Program-made: the position numbers and the translations under genes | Shown here: positions 909 through 64,000 of the stretch, piece after piece | Layout: each line of letters begins with the position of its first letter | How positions within the stretch are numbered: position 1 is the first letter of the stretch | Notes under the pieces: generated by a model | What the model saw: only the letters and a program-made list of their open reading frames with translations | Databases searched by the model: none | What the model was told of the DNA's origin: nothing | Source: Penicillus capitatus | Lineage: Eukaryota > Plantae > Chlorophyta | Direction: 5' to 3' | Assembly (NCBI GenBank): GCA_965649825.1 | Contig: OZ287707.1 | Span: forward strand, 774,292-838,291 | Length of the DNA: 64,000 nt

Positions 909-3900
909 TTACGCAGATCGTATCAACTCCAAGATTCCTGGGTACTCATCTTCGAAGCAGCTCTCGACATGCGATACAAGTGAATGGGCCTCGTCTCTTT
1001 TGTATGCGCCCAAAGATTCTGACGTCTTTGCGTGGAGGACGATGTTCACTTCGTCGTTGTGTATAGTTTCTTCTATTGTGACAGGAAATTCGAACAGAAG
1101 CTCGACAAGGTGTCGTGTGCTTTCGGGATATTCCCCTGTGATGACTTTCGAAATCAGGTCTCGAAATGTATCGCGTATGATGTCATCGTCTTCCGTTTTC
1201 GCGTCCATATCGCCGTTGTCGTTTGCCTCTCCAAAGGCACCGCTAGAAGAGGACGGTCCTGCGATCGAGGCGTGACGGTTGATATCTTCTTCCGTTCGGT
1301 AGGCACCTCGGCGAGTATCTTGCCAAACATCATTGGATGCCAAGTAACCGTCCGGTATTTGACGTGCTGCCGTTTGAACGGTCTCCTTGGCGTCCTTCGC
1401 CGCTCGGCCGACATCTTCGCTCTCGTCTTCCGTTCCTCTTTCGAGCATCGGCATCAGAAAGGCGGCGCAACTAGGCTCTGCCTCCACGATCTTCCCGACG
1501 ACCTCCATCGCTTTCTCTCGCACATCTTCATGTACATTTCCGCATGCCAATTCGATCAAAGGCATGACATCACTTAGGAGCGACGGGTTCGCCATCAAGA
1601 CGCGGCCGATCATGAGTGTTGCTACGACTCGCACGCCTTCTTCCGGATCTGAGATACCGCGTTCCAATAACGGCAGAAATTCATTCAAGAGCTTAGGCGA
1701 CCGGGACAAAAATGCCTCAGACGACAGCATTGCCATGATTCTCACTCCCTGATCCGCATCCACACATCCTCTCTTGAGAATGGACATGAGTTTCACTGCA
1801 TAACGGGGCGCCTTCTTGGCGATATTTCCAACGACCATGATGATTCTCTGCCTAACATCTTCGTCTAGATCCGTGTATCTGACGTCAAGCATAGAAAAGA
1901 GCTCGGCAGAGAGCTTTGGAACGTGTGTCATAAGATCTTGTATCATGTCTAAGGCTTGTTTGCGGATGCGAGGGCTTCGATCTGACAATTTGGCACGTGC
2001 CATTCCTACCAAGGTAGTCAAGTGACGTGGCGCGTGTTTTGCAAGTTTTACAACATCTTCAAATATATGCGTGCCGATGAGATCTTCAGTTCTTTGGGTC
2101 TCTGTGAACGTGTCAAGAACCGTAGAGAATCCGGATATCAGATCGCGATATTGATCGAGCTTGTCCATGACGAGGTTCCAAAGTCGAGTGCTCGGTTCCA
2201 ATTGCATAAGCACATGCACCAATGCATCCATCACTTGCGAAGCCGTCCCACCAATCCAATCATCATCGACAGACGAATCCACCAATCCAGCTGCCCACTC
2301 GTCAAGAATTTGAAGCTTCAAGAAAAAGTGTTGCACGCCGAGGATCTCGACCGGCGATCGATCGATCGACGAGAACACTTCGCGAACGACAACTGTACCG
2401 CGCCAGTCTGCAAGGGCCTGTGCCGTGAGAGCAACGATCATCCGGCTCTTTCTCTCATATTTTCTCTTTGTTAAGAAATCCGCCGATTCCTGTCGCTCTC
2501 TCGAAGTTCCTTTTCTCAATCGATATGCGATATATCTTCCAGCAAAGTACTCTTGGAACGTCCTATTAGGAAAATAGTACTTGTCTTTTTCCATATCAAA
2601 AAACACGTATCCGCTGTCCCTTAGCATTCCCATGACCACCCCAGTTGATGCTTGCTCTTCGAAAAGGCTTCGATCGATCAGCCTCTGGTCCTTTTGGACG
2701 GCACGGAAGGCGATGACATCTATGCGTCGCAAAACATCTTCGCGCAAAACTCTATCCATGCGTGGCCGTCTTGAAAATCGAGACCACAGCATGTTAACAA
2801 TCTTCGTGTACAGTGAGAAGACGCTCTTTCTTCGCTTTTCGTGCACGAGTGTCTCTTCATTGTCTGCCCAGAAGAGAGATAGAATATAGGCCATCACTGG
2901 GATATGCATGAGCGTCCACAACTCGGGATTCGATTTGAAGTACTTCATGAATTCGTTGAAGGAGCTGGTCGAGAGCTCACTGCTGGCAAATGTCTTCACC
3001 TGTTCATCATCCATACCCAGACACTCGACCACACGATCGGCAAAAAGCAGTTCCCCACGAAGACCGTAAGAGGCACTGAACAAGAGTATCTTGCACCGGC
3101 ATTCTTTGGCATGCGTTATGATTCCGCTGGCGAGTTCGTCAGCTTTGTCGATGCCATCGAGCACCAACAATGTCCGTTGTGAATTGAGGTTGTCGTGTAT
3201 TTGCGTGCGGAGCGATTGACTGATAGGGTCCCTGCGGTCTGAGTAACAGATATCTGCTATGGCTTCTTCCAGCGTCAACGAACCCCTTCCGCCTTCGTCC
3301 ACACTGCACAGCTTTCTCACGGGAAGAACGTACATGGTCTTGAATTCTCTCATAAACCCGCCCTGTGTCCAATTGTATGCCAACATTCGACTCAAGCACG
3401 TCTTTCCGGAGCCAGAATTTCCGTAGATGAGCACTTTCCTTATCACGGCAGCTCTCGGTCCCGATTCGCATGCCTCTCTCAGTCTAAAAAGGTACTCCGG
3501 GTTTATGCGTTTTCTTGTATCGTGAGCCCAAGTGAACTGGGCATTTACTGGATCGTATCCAGATCCTGCTTCCATACTCCACTCGACCAATTTTTCATTA
3601 TCGGGATTGTCATAGGCAACAATAGAGAACTCCATATCCTTCACATGCCTGCACGCACCGTTGTTGACAAGAGACGGCGCCTTTAATGACCAATGCATCA
3701 GCGAATGGATATGACAAGGAGGATCGATGATACCTTGGTAAAGTCATACTGATTGTAGGCTTTGACGAGATCCCGCAAACCGCGATAAACTTCCTCAAGG
3801 GGAATGTACCCTATCATCTCTCCAAGCGTGATTGAGAGTTCCTTGTTCCAATAACTTCGTGGTCTGCTCTCGCGTTGGATTTTGAGTTTCTCTTCAAACG

Positions 3901-6406: not shown

Positions 6407-8613
6407 ATGACGATTGCAGAAAGCAGCAGCGCAGCTCGTCCATGGATCCATACACGACATACTACACCGGCGTGTTCCCAGCTGCGACGTCAGAAGGAAG
6501 TCGCGACGAGGGGACCAGTGCGACGCTGGGGACCTCGGGGCCCAAGGCAGGATCCTCGGCGTCCGTGTATCATCTTTCAAGCTGTTTCGGATACCGGCAG
6601 TCGAGAAACGGCACAGGAAGTCGTCTTCGGTGACGGCAAAGTGATCAAAGTACAACAGGATTGCTTGCTGTCCTGCTTTGCTGCAAGACGTGAGTGAGAT
6701 CAGGTCCCTCCATCAAGGATTCGAAATTTCTCCATCATTGCCCACATCGACCATGGCAAATCGACATTGGCAGATCAGCTGTTACTCAAAACGCAGACCG
6801 TCAGCGATCGCGAGATGCAAGCTCAGTTTATGGATATGAATGCGATTGAGCGAGAGCGAGGCATTACGATAAAATTGAACACAGCCCGAATGAAATATAA
6901 AGCACAAGATGGCCACCTCTATGCCCTGAACCTGATTGATACGCCAGGTCATGTGGATTTTGGCTACGAGGTCTCGCGTTCCTTGGCGGCATGTGAAGGA
7001 GCTCTCCTCGTTGTCGATGCTGCTCAAGGCGTCGAAGCACAGACTCTGGCAAATGTCTATCTGGCATTAGAGAATAACTTGGAGATCGTCGTTGTCCTCA
7101 ACAAGATCGATTTGCCAGGCGCAGCACCGGCACGAGTGAAACAAGAGATTGAAGATGTGATTGGATTGGATGCCTCGGATGCTCTGTTGGTTTCGGCAAA
7201 GAACGGAATTGGCATTGATGAGCTACTGGAAGCCATCGTTCGCAAAATCCCTCCACCCCAGGTCTGCAAGGACCCCTATGCACTGAGTGCATGTCTGTCT
7301 GCAGGCATTGATAGATGATCCTCTAAGAGCACTGATTTTTGACAGCTACTATGATGATTACAGAGGAGTGATCTGTCAGTTTCGTGTGACGGACGGCGAG
7401 ATTCGTTGCGGCGATCGCATTCGATTGATGAACACCGAAAAGGAATTTGAAGTGGATGAGCTCGGCGTACTGGCTCCACATCGTGTCCAGGTCGATTGCC
7501 TTTTCTCTGGCGAAGTTGGCTACCTAGCAGCTTCCATCAAACAAGTCTCCGATGCCCGTGTGGGTGATACCATTACCATGCAGAAGACACCGGCCAACGA
7601 GCCCCTTCCCGGATATGCCGAAGCGCGGCCCATGGTGTATTGTGGACTCTTCCCAACCTCGGCAGATCAATACCAAATGCTGAGGACGTCACTCGATAAA
7701 CTGCAGCTCAACGATGCAGCTCTTGTCTTCGAACCTGAGAATTCTGTGGCCATGGGATCCGGTTTCAGATGTGGTTTTCTGGGTTTGCTGCACATGGAAA
7801 TTGTCCAGGAACGCTTAGAACGCGAATACGATTTGGATCTGATCATTACGGCACCCACTGTTGTGTACAAGTGCACGACATTGGATCATCAGGAAATCAT
7901 TGTTTCGAATCCCAATGACCTGCCCGAGCCACAAAAGAGGAAATCGCTGTTTGAGCCTTTCTGCAGAGTGGAAATCATTACACCCAAAGACTATGTCGGG
8001 CCAGTCATGGATCTCTGCCAAAGCAGAAGAGGAGAATACGTATCCATGCAGTATCTGAACGAACAGAGAACATCGCTGGTGTACTTCATTCCTCTGGCAG
8101 AAGTGGTCACAGATTTCTTTGACGCACTGAAGTCCAGAAGCAAAGGATATGCATCCATGGAGTATACACTGGGCGATTACCGAGAGAGCGATCTGGTCAA
8201 GTTGGAGATTCGGATTAACAACGAAGCGGCAGATCCGCTGGCCACGATTGTCCACAGAGACAATGCCTATGTCGTCGGCAAAGAACTGGCAATCAAACTG
8301 AAGGAGCTCATTCCCAAGCAACAATTCCGAGTTCCTATTCAGGTAAACCATGGCCATAGCTCCCTGGAGGTGTGCATTGGCTGGATGGTAGGCAGCGATC
8401 GGGTCACGGGTCATTGCGTCGGCGGTCATTCCTGCTTTGAGGAAAGATGTATTGGCCAAATGCTACGGAGGCGATATTACCCGCAAAAAGAAGCTACTGA
8501 AGAAACAGGCCGCAGGGAAGAAACGCATGAAATCTATTGGAAAGGTGGCGATTCCGCAAGAAGCCTTTATGGCTGTACTGCAGGTTGGAAAGCCAAAGGA
8601 GAAGGAGGAGTGA
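6407..8613 (+). CDS. lepA: Translation factor LepA/EF-4 (GUF1), plastid-type with transit peptide
   Basis: [64 protein letters not shown]; introns near 6650, 7261 and 8343. Confidence 0.97.
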
Positions 8614-26710: not shown

Positions 26711-28400
26711 TTACAGTTTGTCGATGTGGATTTGGTTCTTGAGATCGTCGACGATCGTCTGGTCTTGACAGGCCTTCATCGTCTTGACGTGCTCTCCTTC
26801 GTCATCCCGGATGTTCACAAAGACATCGTAAAGACTGGAACAACTTGGACGGCGAATTTCATCCTTCCCCTGAGATGTCTGAAACTTGTCAAACTATAGA
26901 CAGCATCACACTTGTGAAAAATGCGTGTCCTCTTGAGGTACAGACCATGTAAAGATCATCGCCTCGGTAGTACTGAACGGCAACGAATGGGGGAGGGAGT
27001 TTTTTGAGCAGTGCCTCGTTTGCATCGACAAATTCGCCGTAGGTGTCCACAGCGTGCGCTTCAATGAGCTCGCTGAAATTGTATGCCAGTTCAGGAGAGA
27101 AGACGTAGAACAGGAGCAGCACCCAGTAATAGAAGATAGCGGCGTGTTGGCCCATAAAACGATCGATCCAGTACTGATCCCCGCCAAGAGATTCCATAAT
27201 CTGCAAATGGTGCAATTCGTTCCATTCCTCTGCAAAATGGATCTTTCTAAGTGCAGAGCCCTGTCTCCACCACCCCAGCGACTCATAGAGATGCAGCATG
27301 GAGATGTAACTAAAGTACGGCATCCGTGCTACTGTCTCCAAAAACCAAAACCGTTGCAATGGCCTAGCAGCACAACCTGAGACAATAAGAAGGCGCCTTA
27401 TGTGCCCACCTGTTGTTGAAGAGAACGTCCAGGAGATAGCAGAGGGTGTAGTAGGCAATCTTGATGTACCATGGCGCACGGATCTCTCCACCGCGTGCAT
27501 GTCGTTGTCTTTCCCTTTCCCAAACCCCATCGTTGCTGAGGGTGAGGAGTAAAAGGCGTTCTCGGATGGCCTGACATTCATCGTCTGGCAGGGCAATTAA
27601 CTCAGTCACGTCCTGCTCGGCATCAACGGAGTCTGTAAAGGTCATAGGTCTGAGTTCTGGATCCTTGATCTCTGAGACGATCTTGTTTTCTTCTAGTTTT
27701 TTGTCCAGCGCTGCGAATGCCTCTACAAATCGACTGGCAACCCAATAGTAGGCCTAGTCTTAACATTTATTCACGATCGATGGACATCTTGATGTGACGG
27801 ATGTGACCTTTCCAGCTATATTGGTCGCCGGGTTTTGTTCGGAGATCTTCCTGAACACATCTTGACGGAAAGCACGACGCAGTTCATTGTATTCATGGCC
27901 AAAGTTCTGAATCGCCTGCAAAGCATCTCACACGTGATCACACTCTCTGAGTGCATGGAACGTCAAATCACCAGTGACCAAAGAGATGATGGAATTTTGC
28001 CGAACTCGTCTCCATACATTCGATCCTTCGAGCGAAATCCATAATCGCAGCAGAGTACCTAATGACTTCCTGCTGCTCCGATCGATTCCTTCGACAGATT
28101 TCGTCATCTCACTTGCACGAGGTTGCCATCTCTATCGACGAAAGGCACGCAAACTTCACCATCATCGACGGATGCTTCCTTTTCTCCATCACTGCACAAT
28201 GTGCATCACCCTTTGGTGTCGTAACTGCTGCGGAACTTGTCGATGGGAGAACGCGTTTCTTTCTCCACTTCTTCGGGACTGGCACGTCGGACAGCGAAGC
28301 GATTTCGCGTCAACGGTCGATTGCGAACATATCGATTTCTTAACCCGGATGGCTGCGGTCGCGCTAGGCGCATCGAGAGTCCCCGATACGATAACGCCAT
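26711..28400 (-). CDS. PTOX: Plastid terminal oxidase (plastoquinol oxidase, AOX family)
   Basis: [48 protein letters not shown]; transit-peptide-like MALSYRGL... and CCDYGFRS extension. Confidence 0.95.
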
Positions 28401-28578
28401 TCTATCCGACGCTCCGAATCCCCAACAGCGAAAAACCAACGACGTCACATCATGCACGAACAAACAGGACATGCGACACCGCGACGTAGTAGTCACCTTG
28501 CACGTATGTCTGTCTAGCCGTCGCTTGGCACAGTTATATACTTTTAACAATATTGCCATTAAAACTTCTGTTTTCGAC

Positions 28579-30421
28579 ATGGCCGACGCGTATAACGATC
28601 TAGTGGACGAAGGTCTCTCTGGCCCTTCCGTTCCCAAATCTTCGCCAACCGAACCCGACGCGAAGAAGCAGAAGGTAAGTGACATCGAAGCGTCGTCCGT
28701 GGACGACGGTGCAACAAAAGAAGACATTGTGGCAAAGGACGCCGAGAGGGCCACTCTCGACTCTTGGTTGGCCAAGCTGCCCCACATCGAGCGAGAAAGT
28801 GAAAATGCCTTCGTCATCAGAAGAGGCCACTCTGCTGGAATGCATGTCGATGCTAAGTTCTTCGCTACGCCGCCGTTGTTGCGGCAGCTGTTAGTCGAGG
28901 CCGATAAATCCACAGGCGGATTCCTCTCGGCGCTGACGCAATTGGCAAACGTCGCGACGCTGCCCGGGATCGTTGGGTACTCGCTTGGGATGCCCGATCT
29001 CCACAGCGGTTACGGATTCGCAATTGGAAATATCGCGGCGATGGATATGAACAATCCCGCTGCGGTCGTGTCTCCTGGCGGCGTCGGTTTCGATATCAAC
29101 TGCGGTGTTCGATTGATCCGAACGAATCTCACTCATGCAGATATCACACAAAAAAGGGAAGTCCTGGCCGATGCTATGGCACGTGCGATCCCTGTGGGTG
29201 TCGGCAACACCTCCAACCATCGACTGACCATTCCCGAACTCGATGAGATGTTGAGGGACGGAATGGAGTGGGCAGTGCGACGCGGATACGCATGGGAAGA
29301 GGACCTGACGGTGGTCGAAGAGAACGGCCGCTTCAAGAATGCAAATCCAAATGCAGTCACCAGCCGGGCAAAACAGCGGGGTAAATCACAAGTCGGAACA
29401 CTGGGATCAGGAAATCACTACATCGAAGTGCAGTACGTCGAAGAGGTCTACGATCAAGAAGCAGCGGCAACGATGGGACTGTTCAAAGGACAAGCATGCA
29501 TCATGATCCACACTGGCAGTCGTGGTCTTGGCCACCAGGTCACATCGCCGTGTACTTAAGTGGGCAGTGAGGGATGGTGGTTATGCAGGTCTGTTCCGAT
29601 GCGTTGTGTACGTGCGAAAAGGCAATGGCTCTGAGAAATGTCCGTTTGGTGGATCGTCAGCTGGCTTGTACGCCGATCGATTCGCCTGAAGGAACGCAGT
29701 ACTTGGCGGCAATGGCATGTGCTGCGAATTTTGCCTTCTGCAATCGAACGTTAGTCACATACGATACTCGACGGGTCGTGAGCGAAGTCTTCGGCCGAAC
29801 GGAGCGAGAGTTGGATATGCATGTCGTGTACGATGTTGCACACAACATTGCCAAAATCGAAAAACATATGATCAACAGTATGTCCGCCTTCTTCCATTCT
29901 ACAACATCTATAAGTGTGGACATCTGCTTATATCTAGATGAGGAGAAGAGAGTATTGGTACATCGAAAAGGAGCCACGCGAGCTTTTGGTCCAGGACATC
30001 CCTGTTTGCCAGAGAAGTATCGTGCTATGGGTCAACCAGTATTGATTGGCGGATCCATGGGAACATGCAGCTATGTCCTGATTGGAACACAACGAGCAAT
30101 GGAAACGTCCTTTGGCAGCACCTGTCATGGAGCTGGAAGGTAAAGTGACCCCCACCCCTCCCTGTTCCTGCCCCACACAAGGTATTGGAATTTCCTAGAT
30201 GTATGAGCCGCAACCAAGCAAAACGAGAATTAGACCAACGGTCGGTGTTGATGAATTTAGAGCGGCAAGGGGTGTCCTTGCGCGCAGCTACGCCAAAACT
30301 AGTGGCAGAAGAGGCACCACAGAGCTACAAAGATGTATCCGAAGTGGTTGATTGCTGTCATCTGGCTGGAGTCTCCAAGAAAGTTGTGAAACTGAAGCCC
30401 ATTGTTGTCGTAAAAGGATGA
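28579..30421 (+). CDS. rtcB: RtcB RNA 3'-phosphate/5'-OH ligase (tRNA-splicing ligase, HSPC117 type)
   Basis: MPDLHSGYGFAIG, GGVGFDINCG, GTLGSGNHY, IHTGSRGLGHQ, YDVAHNIAK, HRKGATRAF, GGSMG, STCHGAGR, EEAPQSYK. Confidence 0.97.
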
Positions 30422-60169: not shown

Positions 60170-60201
60170 TCCTTAAAAAGTGTGACCGATCTAGCAAAAT
60201 C

Positions 60202-61074
60202 TCACTCTTCTTTTTCCGGGCCATAGAATCCCTGAATGTATTCCAGTGCGCCCTTTTCGATGACGATTTTATCCGCCCTCAAGATGTCGTAGACATTCAG
60301 GTGTTCTGTGCTGTTAATCACCAGTTTCTCGATATTTCGACCGGCAAGATACAGGTCTCTGTTTTTGTTATCTGTGATCAGAAGACAGTGTTGCGTTCGG
60401 GAGACACCCCATCGTTCCAGAGCCGCCACGACTGATTTGGTCTTGATGTCTGAGAACTTCCCCTCAAGACTTTCTGTAATGATAACATCTTCTGCGGCAC
60501 TTTGCAGAGCTGTTGCCAGGGCCAACCGTCGCTCCTTTTTGTTCATCTTGATACTCCAATCCCGCGGCTAAAGAGTAAAAAAGTGAGATGGTGTGTCCAG
60601 TAGATCGATGGGCACCTTTGGGCCGAAGATCACACCACCGCCGACAATGAGTGGTGAACGATTTGATCCTCGACGTGCTCTGCCTCCTCCTTTTTGTGCG
60701 TAAGGTTTCCTTCCGCCCCCGCGGACCTCGCCTCGTGTCTTTGTACTGGCATTGCCCTGTGAGGGATCATCAATGCTTGAGTCTTTTCCTGAATTGTTTA
60801 CCTTTCGCATATCGCGTCGCACTTTGACGACATAGCGATGCACCAGTCCCTTGGCCGTTTCCGGATCGGCGACTTTGAGGGAAAGGGAATCGTTTCCGAC
60901 GACTTCCCCTTCAAAACCCTTGATTTCCAACGGAACTGGCGGCGCAACGATCGACATTCGTATGCAGGGGGTCAACGTGCGCCCAACCGTGCGAGAAGAG
61001 GGGAGAGGCGACACCAAAGGGACGCCATAGATCGGCTTCGGCGTCGCCAACTGGGTTCCGATTAACTGACGCAT
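60202..61074 (-). CDS. rpl4: Plastid 50S ribosomal protein L4 (nuclear-encoded); first exon probably further upstream
   Basis: [40 protein letters not shown]|[21 protein letters not shown]. Confidence 0.95.
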
Positions 61075-62682: not shown

Positions 62683-64000
62683 TTAAAGAGATAACCGGGA
62701 TGAAGATGTTTCTGTCTTTTTGTGAATGAGCAAGACGTCACATCGCAATCGAACATGTGGCTTTTCGCCAGAAGTTGGTGGTATCATATCGAAGTACGGC
62801 AGGGCAACGAGATCTTTCTGTTTATCTGCCAGAATGAGTCTCGCATGCGACAGTGCCGTGAGTAATCGAGCCACAGCACGGGCACCAGCAGCCGTGCAAT
62901 CCAGTCGATGACTGAACTGGATCTGCGCCGCCATCGCCGTTCCAACGCTCTTGGCGTCATTCGTGTTATTGAGTCGAAAGACAATCTTGTCTGCATCCAG
63001 CAAAGCAACACGTTTGGATACGTCCTGCATGAGACGGAGCCACGTCACCACCTGACACTCACCGTTGCGACTTTCGCGCGGAGAATGGATACACTGAATG
63101 CCCAGATCATAACCAGCGATTTCGCGCACACAGGCACGGGATATTGCAATGGATTTGAAGTTCTGGTTATGTGCTGCCAGTCCTGTCGAAAAAACCTGCA
63201 CTCCAGCGCATGTTCGCAGAAATGTAACAAAGGTTGCAGCCGATTTTCTGGGATCTGTCTCGGCAGCGACTTTCACAATGGGCAGGCGGACATCCAGCGT
63301 TTCAGAAAATGCTTCTTCGAGAGGCGGAAGATCTGCAACAGGAAGGTGGAATCGCGGAGGTCGGACAGCAAAGATAGATTTTGAGTCAGTCACCTCCTCA
63401 TCCATCTGCCTCTCCACGAGAGTGAGACACGTGGCATGATGGACCTTCGAATCTTCAAGTCCATCAATCTTAGTGACAGAGGGATAGCAGTCAACGTCGT
63501 GCCGATGACTCATACAATAACGTCGTGTCCAGATAGATGCGATAACACATCGCGCCAGAGCACTCGTTCCCATTGCTAGCACATCCACTCGTCCTTGTTT
63601 GGAGAGCGCTGCTTTCATGGACTTGGCCAACTTACGCATGTCTGTGTCACGCCGGACACGTAGCCTTTCTACGGACCAAGAGGAATCGTTCAATGGAGAC
63701 GATCGTTTCAGCGTGAAGAAGACTTGATTCGAAGAATTGCGATCGATCCTGATCGGCAACGAAATCGGATAGAGATGTGATTGCGAATCGCCTTACCAGA
63801 AACAATGATTGGCTTGGAAATGGATATCATCTGCCTCTTGCATCCTCGCTTTATAACGTGCAATCGAGACGCCCTTGATAAATCGAGACAAAGATTCGTC
63901 GCCTGAAGCGATCGTGTCACAGACGCCATGCTTCTGAAGATGTAGGAAGATCGCCGTCGCTAGTGAACGGTAATCCGTCTTGTTGCTGACACGGAACTCT
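62683..64000 (-). CDS. Protein with at least four tandem SpoVS-like (Alba-fold) domains; 5' end outside window
   Basis: Four repeats of the SpoVS pattern hhKV..(T/S)D...hA.Ah...h...G.h.h.A.G..A....hKAhAIAR; intron 63796-63749 joins the edge exon to ORF 62683..63759. Confidence 0.7.

Follow-up and report, generated by a model that had tools for sequence, protein, structure and literature searches.

Gene structure and domain content of the locus

The window analysed here, a 64,000-nucleotide (nt) stretch of the Penicillus capitatus contig OZ287707.1, carries at its right end a minus-strand gene for a protein made of repeated SpoVS/Alba-like units. All coordinates below are window positions unless another contig is named. 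The minus-strand frame that runs from 63999 to 62683 is the same as that of the open reading frame (ORF) at 62683..63759, and its sole interruption is a TAA codon at 63795-63793. This stop codon sits within GTAAGG...CAG, that is, within a 48-nt GT-AG spliceosomal intron at 63749..63796. Removal of the intron joins ...HCFW to IDRNSS... in frame through a split Trp codon (phase 2) located at the tip of the beta3-beta4 hairpin of the first domain, and gives an in-window product of 422 amino acids (aa). The part of exon 1 that lies in the window (63797..64000) encodes the last residue of an N-terminal leader and most of the first domain (D1), and exon 2 (62683..63748) encodes the end of D1, the second domain (D2), a linker, the third and fourth domains (D3 and D4), a short tail and the stop codon (62685..62683).

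Comparison with related sequences bears on whether this intron is spliced. Full-length homologues are continuous over the splice junction (HLFWLDRNSS in P0002 and HSFWHDRNST in the Caulerpa protein P0003), and several database relatives are ORF fragments that stop just after '...FW' (P0014, P0015, P0018 and P0013, which is the window's own). A GT...AG intron of identical position and phase is found in two related contigs, with a length of 44 nt in L003 (ERR4592244) and 41 nt in L004 (SRR31575927); because neither length is a multiple of three, the frame is kept only if these introns are spliced. Another relative, L001 (JGI 3300008031), is intronless at the D1 junction. The LepA gene of the same window contains a 43-nt intron, which indicates that the size class of the 48-nt intron is normal for this genome. 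This comparison with two related genomes confirms the 48-nt intron as real. The gene is a nuclear, intron-containing one.

To follow the gene beyond position 64000, we extended it via its own fragment P0001 to a public 894-kb ENA metagenome contig (locus L002, for which the window coordinate equals 73640 minus the L002 coordinate). The frame runs 218 nt further to an ATG at window-equivalent position 64218 (L002 9422), with an in-frame stop 12 codons upstream of that ATG. The extension adds a 73-residue, non-repeat N-terminus (MALRTAASRIYWQSFVSQGTKSFPFSGRWRSFSD...), and the full protein is 495 aa long with exactly four SpoVS domains. A six-frame scan with a SpoVS hidden Markov model (HMM) over the whole window and over L002 to 10 kb past the edge revealed no other SpoVS unit or nearby paralogue. 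Thus the four units written out in the preliminary description are indeed present in the sequence and D1 is joined to the others through the intron as proposed there, while the suggestion that there are 'at least four', with more repeats past the edge, is not borne out. Public prokaryote-style calls split this gene into a 141-aa ORF covering exon 1 (L002 9404..9847) and P0001 (62683..63639), a 318-aa fragment that starts at an internal Met, holds three domains and carries only a weak SpoVS flag. On this contig, such gene calling masked the true four-domain architecture.

We compared the spliced protein and its individual units with known domain families. The protein matched the Pfam SpoVS family (PF04232) with E = 8.3e-30 and 102.8 bits (cut-off 24) over four stretches. 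When the units were scanned singly, D2 (63406..63669, aa 168-255), D3 (63019..63285, aa 296-384) and D4 (62713..62991, aa 394-486) scored 36.4 bits (4.6e-09), 28.8 bits (1.1e-06) and 35.2 bits (1.1e-08), respectively, all above the cut-off. The intron-split D1 (63700..63999, aa 74-157) scored 17.5 bits by itself, below the cut-off, and reached 45 bits with a SpoVS HMM that had been rebuilt on the eukaryotic relatives. In addition, each unit aligned to 88-aa single-domain SpoVS proteins better than shuffled copies did (z = 4.5 to 17). The Pfam scan of the protein gave no Alba match (PF01918) at E <= 1, the likeness to Alba being at fold level only, and no match to the CRM domain.

An AlphaFold2 model built from a 16-sequence alignment had a mean predicted local distance difference test score (pLDDT) of 86 and a predicted template modelling score (pTM) of 0.82, and consisted of four beta-alpha-beta-alpha-beta-beta units. 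Its weak spots were the tip of the D2 hairpin, the C-terminal tail and the D2-D3 linker (63286..63405, aa 256-295), a 40-aa acidic segment (isoelectric point (pI) 4.4) with the conserved pattern A..P..F...L...E.AF. Foldseek searches of the PDB retrieved the Thermus thermophilus SpoVS structures 2eh1/2ek0 with a template modelling score (TM) to target of 0.89 and a root mean square deviation (rmsd) of 2.1 Å, as well as Bacillus subtilis SpoVS in the YunD-SpoVS integrative model (9a7h_B, TM 0.92). The next matches were Alba, Rpp20/Rpp25 and Pop6/Pop7, with TM to target of 0.35-0.66. EPSP synthase, AROM and RtcA, which are also made of repeated beta-alpha-beta-alpha-beta-beta units, came up as whole-model Foldseek matches and were rejected with TM of 0.14-0.15 and rmsd of 17-24 Å. 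In a profile search of PDB sequences SpoVS was the sole relative (6.7e-10), and a single-sequence phmmer search with the 422-aa protein returned a marginal SpoVS match (E = 0.035) plus spurious globins. No tandem-SpoVS protein with a solved structure was found among the PDB matches.

By Pfam match and by a predicted fold that superposes on solved SpoVS, the four units are SpoVS/Alba-superfamily domains, in line with the preliminary description, D1 by itself falling below the Pfam cut-off. The protein is a member of SpoVS at the domain level and not an orthologue of bacterial SpoVS, since four domains are fused in the 495-aa product of an intron-containing green-algal gene. The literature treats SpoVS as a small protein of bacteria whose biochemistry is unknown (PMC2732212, PMC8510167, PMC11621453). 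The bacterial proteins of B. subtilis and T. thermophilus (2EH1/2EK0) share with the algal units the same domain, by sequence and predicted fold, including the ...G.....N/R....K...A..AR helix motif and the beta3-beta4 hairpin. However, bacterial SpoVS is a single domain of 86-90 aa without extensions, whereas the algal protein is eukaryotic, with four fused domains of two diverged types, an intron and a leader, and the sporulation role is inapplicable to it.

We also considered that the locus could be an artefact, arising from similarity by chance, from a fragment of bacterial DNA in the assembly or from a pseudogene in decay with a real stop, as might be thought from the truncated 318-aa public product with its weak SpoVS flag and from the stop codon that interrupts the frame. 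This stop lies within a canonical intron kept in position and phase in three genomes, the four Pfam matches reach the E value given above, orthologues are 44-52% identical over their full length with many invariant columns, and the 894-kb contig contains other intron-containing eukaryotic genes. We therefore hold an artefact to be extremely improbable, a pseudogene being effectively excluded by the conservation and the shared intron.

Eukaryotic relatives and the two alternating domain types

Only five closely matching clusters were present in a collection of 5.8 billion proteins. When 1.84 billion representatives were scanned in full with HMMER, 192 clusters were obtained at E <= 0.001, and we counted domains in the best 150 of these 192 with our own SpoVS HMM. 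Two domains were found in 113 clusters, four in 10, three in 8 and one in 23; of the eight entries with three domains, all but one come from truncated ORF calls in the same intron-containing four-domain family. The two-domain relatives are mostly eukaryotic (~110 clusters). When 140 relatives were scanned with Pfam for additional domains, SpoVS was the only one identified, save FumaraseC_C in three and Fe-ADH in two.

The named close relatives are all Bryopsidales. They include two four-domain orthologues, Caulerpa lentillifera g817.t1 (EukProt EP00210; 505 aa, 44-46% identity) and Bryopsis sp. KO-2023 GMH32458.1 (BSKO_00292; 542 aa, ~31% identity), as well as the two-domain paralogues Bryopsis BSKO_00288 and Ostreobium quekettii CAD7704206.1. 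With Caulerpa, Bryopsis and Ostreobium as its nearest relatives, the gene is that of a Bryopsidales-like siphonous green alga; an alga had already been supposed from the letters of the window. Both four-domain orthologues, which are already deposited as hypothetical proteins and are discussed nowhere in the literature searched, likewise consist of a leader followed by four domains in the same order, with the same hairpin tips and linker, and they do not differ in kind from the window protein. Two-domain SpoVS proteins, such as those of Bryopsis, Ostreobium, Chlorarachnion, Sanguina, Creolimax and Amoebidium, contain one pair of domains where the window protein contains two. Their Bryopsidales members have leader-like N-termini, as does the four-domain protein, while many members from outside the Bryopsidales carry a motif like the UAP56-binding motif (UBM), a PY motif and RGG boxes in place of the leader. 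A literature search on eukaryotic SpoVS yielded no study, the sole trace being the use of 'SpoVS' to name a marker gene of volvocine algae, close to the Gonium/Chlamydomonas mating locus. In the literature searched, the tandem eukaryotic architecture, the alternation of its domains and the leader are undescribed, the domain family itself being known.

To type the domains we built N- and C-type HMMs from the first and second domains, respectively, of 106 two-domain relatives. When these same sequences were scored, 99 first domains and 104 second domains out of 106 preferred their own HMM. With the type HMMs, D1 and D3 were assigned to the N type and D2 and D4 to the C type, in the window protein as well as in three orthologues. 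In a neighbour-joining tree D1 and D3 share a clade with the N domains of two-domain proteins that bear leaders, among them those of Bryopsis and Ostreobium, and D2 and D4 fall in the matching C clade. The pattern is not clean in raw pairwise scores between units and becomes visible only with the type-specific HMMs and the tree. From this typing and tree, the evolutionary repeat unit is the N-C pair, and the ancestor would have been a two-domain protein whose pair was duplicated. In the same tree, three other four-domain lineages, namely the P0020/P0090/P0152 group, the euglenids Neometanema and Chasmostoma and the diplonemid Namystynia, duplicated their pairs independently.

The repeat unit and the high pTM together led us to propose that the two domains of each N-C pair fold together into an intramolecular pseudo-heterodimer, the covalent counterpart of Alba-fold dimers such as Rpp20/Rpp25, and that the two pairs may pack against each other in a single compact body, which would make the protein a fused dimer of pairs. 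Four domains of 85 aa floating independently could not be expected to give a pTM of 0.82 over 422 residues, so the model implies a compact body. The N-C-N-C typing, the domain counts of two or four and the pTM all bear on the dimer as the unit. Given the two alternating domain types and the compact four-domain body of the model, which is not an open array, the 'pre-assembled polymer' imagined in the preliminary description appears overstated. Alba heterodimers (archaeal Alba1/Alba2 and Rpp20/Rpp25, that is Pop7/Pop6, of RNase P/MRP) belong to the same fold superfamily (PMC11621453). In these, two diverged paralogous domains bind nucleic acid by their hairpins, and by analogy a similar unit is proposed here. 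Unlike them, the algal pair is covalent and duplicated and has no Pfam Alba match in its sequence.

The leader, the conserved surface and the proposed ligand

The first 33 positions of the 73-aa leader are free of acidic residues, include five R/K and are rich in S, T and aromatic residues. This stretch also contains an R-S-F|S motif, which we take to resemble the -3R cleavage motif of mitochondrial presequences. Comparable leaders are found in the Caulerpa, Bryopsis and environmental orthologues, with helical hydrophobic moments of 0.48-0.83 in the orthologues. In its composition the leader looks like an organelle-type targeting sequence, and such a presequence-like N-terminus fits the organelle location that had been suggested earlier. 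The analysis of hydrophobic moment and charge does not separate mitochondrion from plastid; the mitochondrion would be the somewhat likelier destination.

Alternatively, the protein could bind RNA in the cytosol or the nucleus, like its RGG- and UBM-bearing relatives, the 73-residue N-terminus then being disordered and not a targeting signal. Most eukaryotic relatives do have non-organellar N-termini with RGG, UBM or motifs resembling PY nuclear localization signals, but the window protein and its Bryopsidales relatives lack UBM, PY and RGG motifs alike. Their N-termini are instead acid-free and rich in Arg, Ser and aromatic residues, with high hydrophobic moments in the orthologues, and the two-domain paralogues that group with D1-D2 bear leaders too. 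We consider this alternative distinctly unlikely.

All four domains are basic, with a pI of 9.2 for D1, 9.7 for D2, 8.9 for D3 and 9.8 for D4, and the mature protein has a pI of 9.3. Conservation in the family peaks at the tips of the beta3-beta4 hairpins in the two N-type domains, where D1 has FWxDRNSxNQ and D3 has IHxPRxxRNGECQ, the latter ranking first. The beta1-alpha1 loops are conserved too (for example NxxDAKxVG in D4), and invariant R, N and K residues are located in these hairpin tips and loops. In Alba proteins, the hairpin and beta1-alpha1 loop elements contact nucleic acid. Bacterial SpoVS has been assigned to the Alba superfamily (PMC11621453) and its function is defined by genetics only, with a late sporulation role in Bacillus (PMC8510167).

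The reading we favour, and to which we give an even chance, is that the window gene encodes an organelle-targeted, basic nucleic-acid-binding protein whose N-C pairs form pseudo-dimers; the pairing, the ligand and the location we infer from the sequence and the model. The basic mature protein would present the Arg/Asn-rich beta3-beta4 hairpin tips of D1 and D3 and would bind nucleic acid, RNA more likely than DNA, within the organelle, where it could act as an RNA chaperone, a processing factor or a nucleoid-type factor. Several points weigh against this. Plastid and mitochondrial leaders of chlorophytes are hard to distinguish and the leader is poorly conserved in sequence. Only 16 sequences stand in the alignment behind the AlphaFold2 model, the neighbour-joining tree is without bootstraps and has distances near saturation, and the D1:D2 and D3:D4 pairing is deduced from the pTM and the evolutionary pattern. 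Moreover, nucleic-acid binding has been demonstrated for no SpoVS protein, DNA binding being a prediction (PMC2732212) and the bacterial function being defined by genetics (PMC8510167). Finally, the only complex in which B. subtilis SpoVS is modelled, the integrative cross-linking model 9a7h retrieved above, has a protein partner, YunD.

These last two points are also those that speak for a protein-binding adaptor or regulator, in which the fused SpoVS pairs would dock on an enzyme partner as modelled for B. subtilis SpoVS-YunD, and the invariant residues C237, C246, C389, C442, H379 and H459 (Caulerpa numbering) could equally suit a protein or metal site. Such an adaptor is nevertheless rather unlikely in our view: the four domains are basic, the fold class is strongly linked to nucleic-acid binding (PMC2732212, PMC11621453), and in relatives the same module is found joined to RGG boxes and to a motif of mRNA export. 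A literature search on YunD-SpoVS returned nothing useful.

The favoured reading, an organellar nucleic-acid-binding protein, has a parallel in the route by which plant CRM proteins arose, single-domain bacterial YhbY having given rise to multi-copy plant proteins that act as organellar splicing and rRNA-maturation factors (PMC4021458). In CRS1, CAF1/2 and CFM2/3, as would be the case here, a ~10-kDa bacterial domain with a fold related to IF3-C and Alba came to be used in multi-copy, organelle-targeted proteins. The CRM domain belongs to another family without sequence relationship to SpoVS, and the parallel is an analogy, not a sign of membership and not evidence. The mitochondrial genomes of Bryopsidales are inflated with introns (PMC6944098). 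As a speculative extension, to which we assign a low probability, the four-SpoVS protein and its two-domain paralogue could be a lineage-specific organellar RNA factor, the counterpart of CRM proteins for the intron-rich, inflated organelle genomes of Bryopsidales, and tandem SpoVS pairs could be an unrecognised eukaryotic RNA-binding module that is also used in an ALY/REF-like nuclear mRNA-export adaptor of many protists and green algae.

In eukaryotes SpoVS thus occurs as two fused domains; in this alga the pair is duplicated and preceded by an organelle-type leader, and in other lineages it follows motifs characteristic of nuclear mRNA-export adaptors. If the proposed binding is true, SpoVS gains a biochemical function, the eukaryotic repertoire gains a new RNA-binding module and the little-studied organelles of Bryopsidales gain a candidate factor.

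Motifs of the relatives and neighbouring genes

We examined 130 multi-domain relatives for short motifs outside the SpoVS domains. An N-terminal K-L-D-M-S-L-D-D-I-I motif was present in 21 of them, which have two or four domains, where shuffled sequences lead to an expectation of 0.01; a [RKH]x1-5PY motif was found in 39 and at least four RG/RGG motifs in 13. The carriers of KLDMSLDDII include P0022, P0031, P0047, P0072, P0085, P0088, P0090 and P0106, with RGG boxes and an R..PY motif following it. A PDB search with one UBM-like N-terminus as a single sequence found nothing, and with a profile of the 21 N-terminal sequences, run against all PDB sequences, the best match was the N-terminus of REF2 and THOC4/ALYREF, MADKMDMSLDDIIK (E = 0.016). 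This N-terminal stretch of REF2/ALYREF is the UAP56-binding motif of mRNA-export adaptors (PMC5095910). The match suggests that the motif-bearing relatives are ALY/REF-type adaptors in which a SpoVS pair replaces the RNA recognition motif domain of ALYREF. Adaptors of this kind are undescribed in the literature mentioning SpoVS since 2015. The ALY/REF-like motifs of the relatives thus lend support to an RNA-related role of the eukaryotic SpoVS pair generally, the window protein itself being without them.

A gene for a chloroplast-type LepA/GUF1 lies on the plus strand of the window at 6578..8604. At least one GT-AG intron of 43 nt (about 7260..7302) interrupts it, and its frame changes a second time near 8392-8426. 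Its best named matches are EukProt g766.t1 (76% identity; the naming is Caulerpa-like and the species unconfirmed), Ostreobium (67%) and Bryopsis (66%), followed by other chlorophytes with lower values, which likewise places the host near the Bryopsidales. In the window the LepA and SpoVS genes are 55 kb apart; the Caulerpa-style numbers are g766 for LepA and g817 for the four-domain gene. On an 11.4-Mb contig of Bryopsis sp. KO-2023, BSKO_00288 and BSKO_00292 lie at a distance of four gene models, and the same contig carries BSKO_01269, the LepA orthologue. The proximity of the LepA and SpoVS genes may reflect conserved linkage.

An ORF at 28237..29559 on the plus strand matches the tRNA-splicing ligase RtcB in its C-terminal half (E = 3.6e-75), and its N-terminal 234 residues are without a match. 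Because the match covers the first 197 of 426 profile positions, more exons must follow. On the minus strand, a 929-aa ORF at 909..3698 encodes a STAND NTPase of the NACHT/NB-ARC type at its N-terminus and HEAT/PDS5-like repeats behind it; the architecture is NLR-like, here in a green alga. The neighbour of the SpoVS gene, 1.6 kb downstream of it, is a minus-strand gene for ribosomal protein L4 (~60200..61074), made of two ORFs split by a short intron, whose product has a Pro/Ser/Thr-rich N-terminal extension and is probably organellar.

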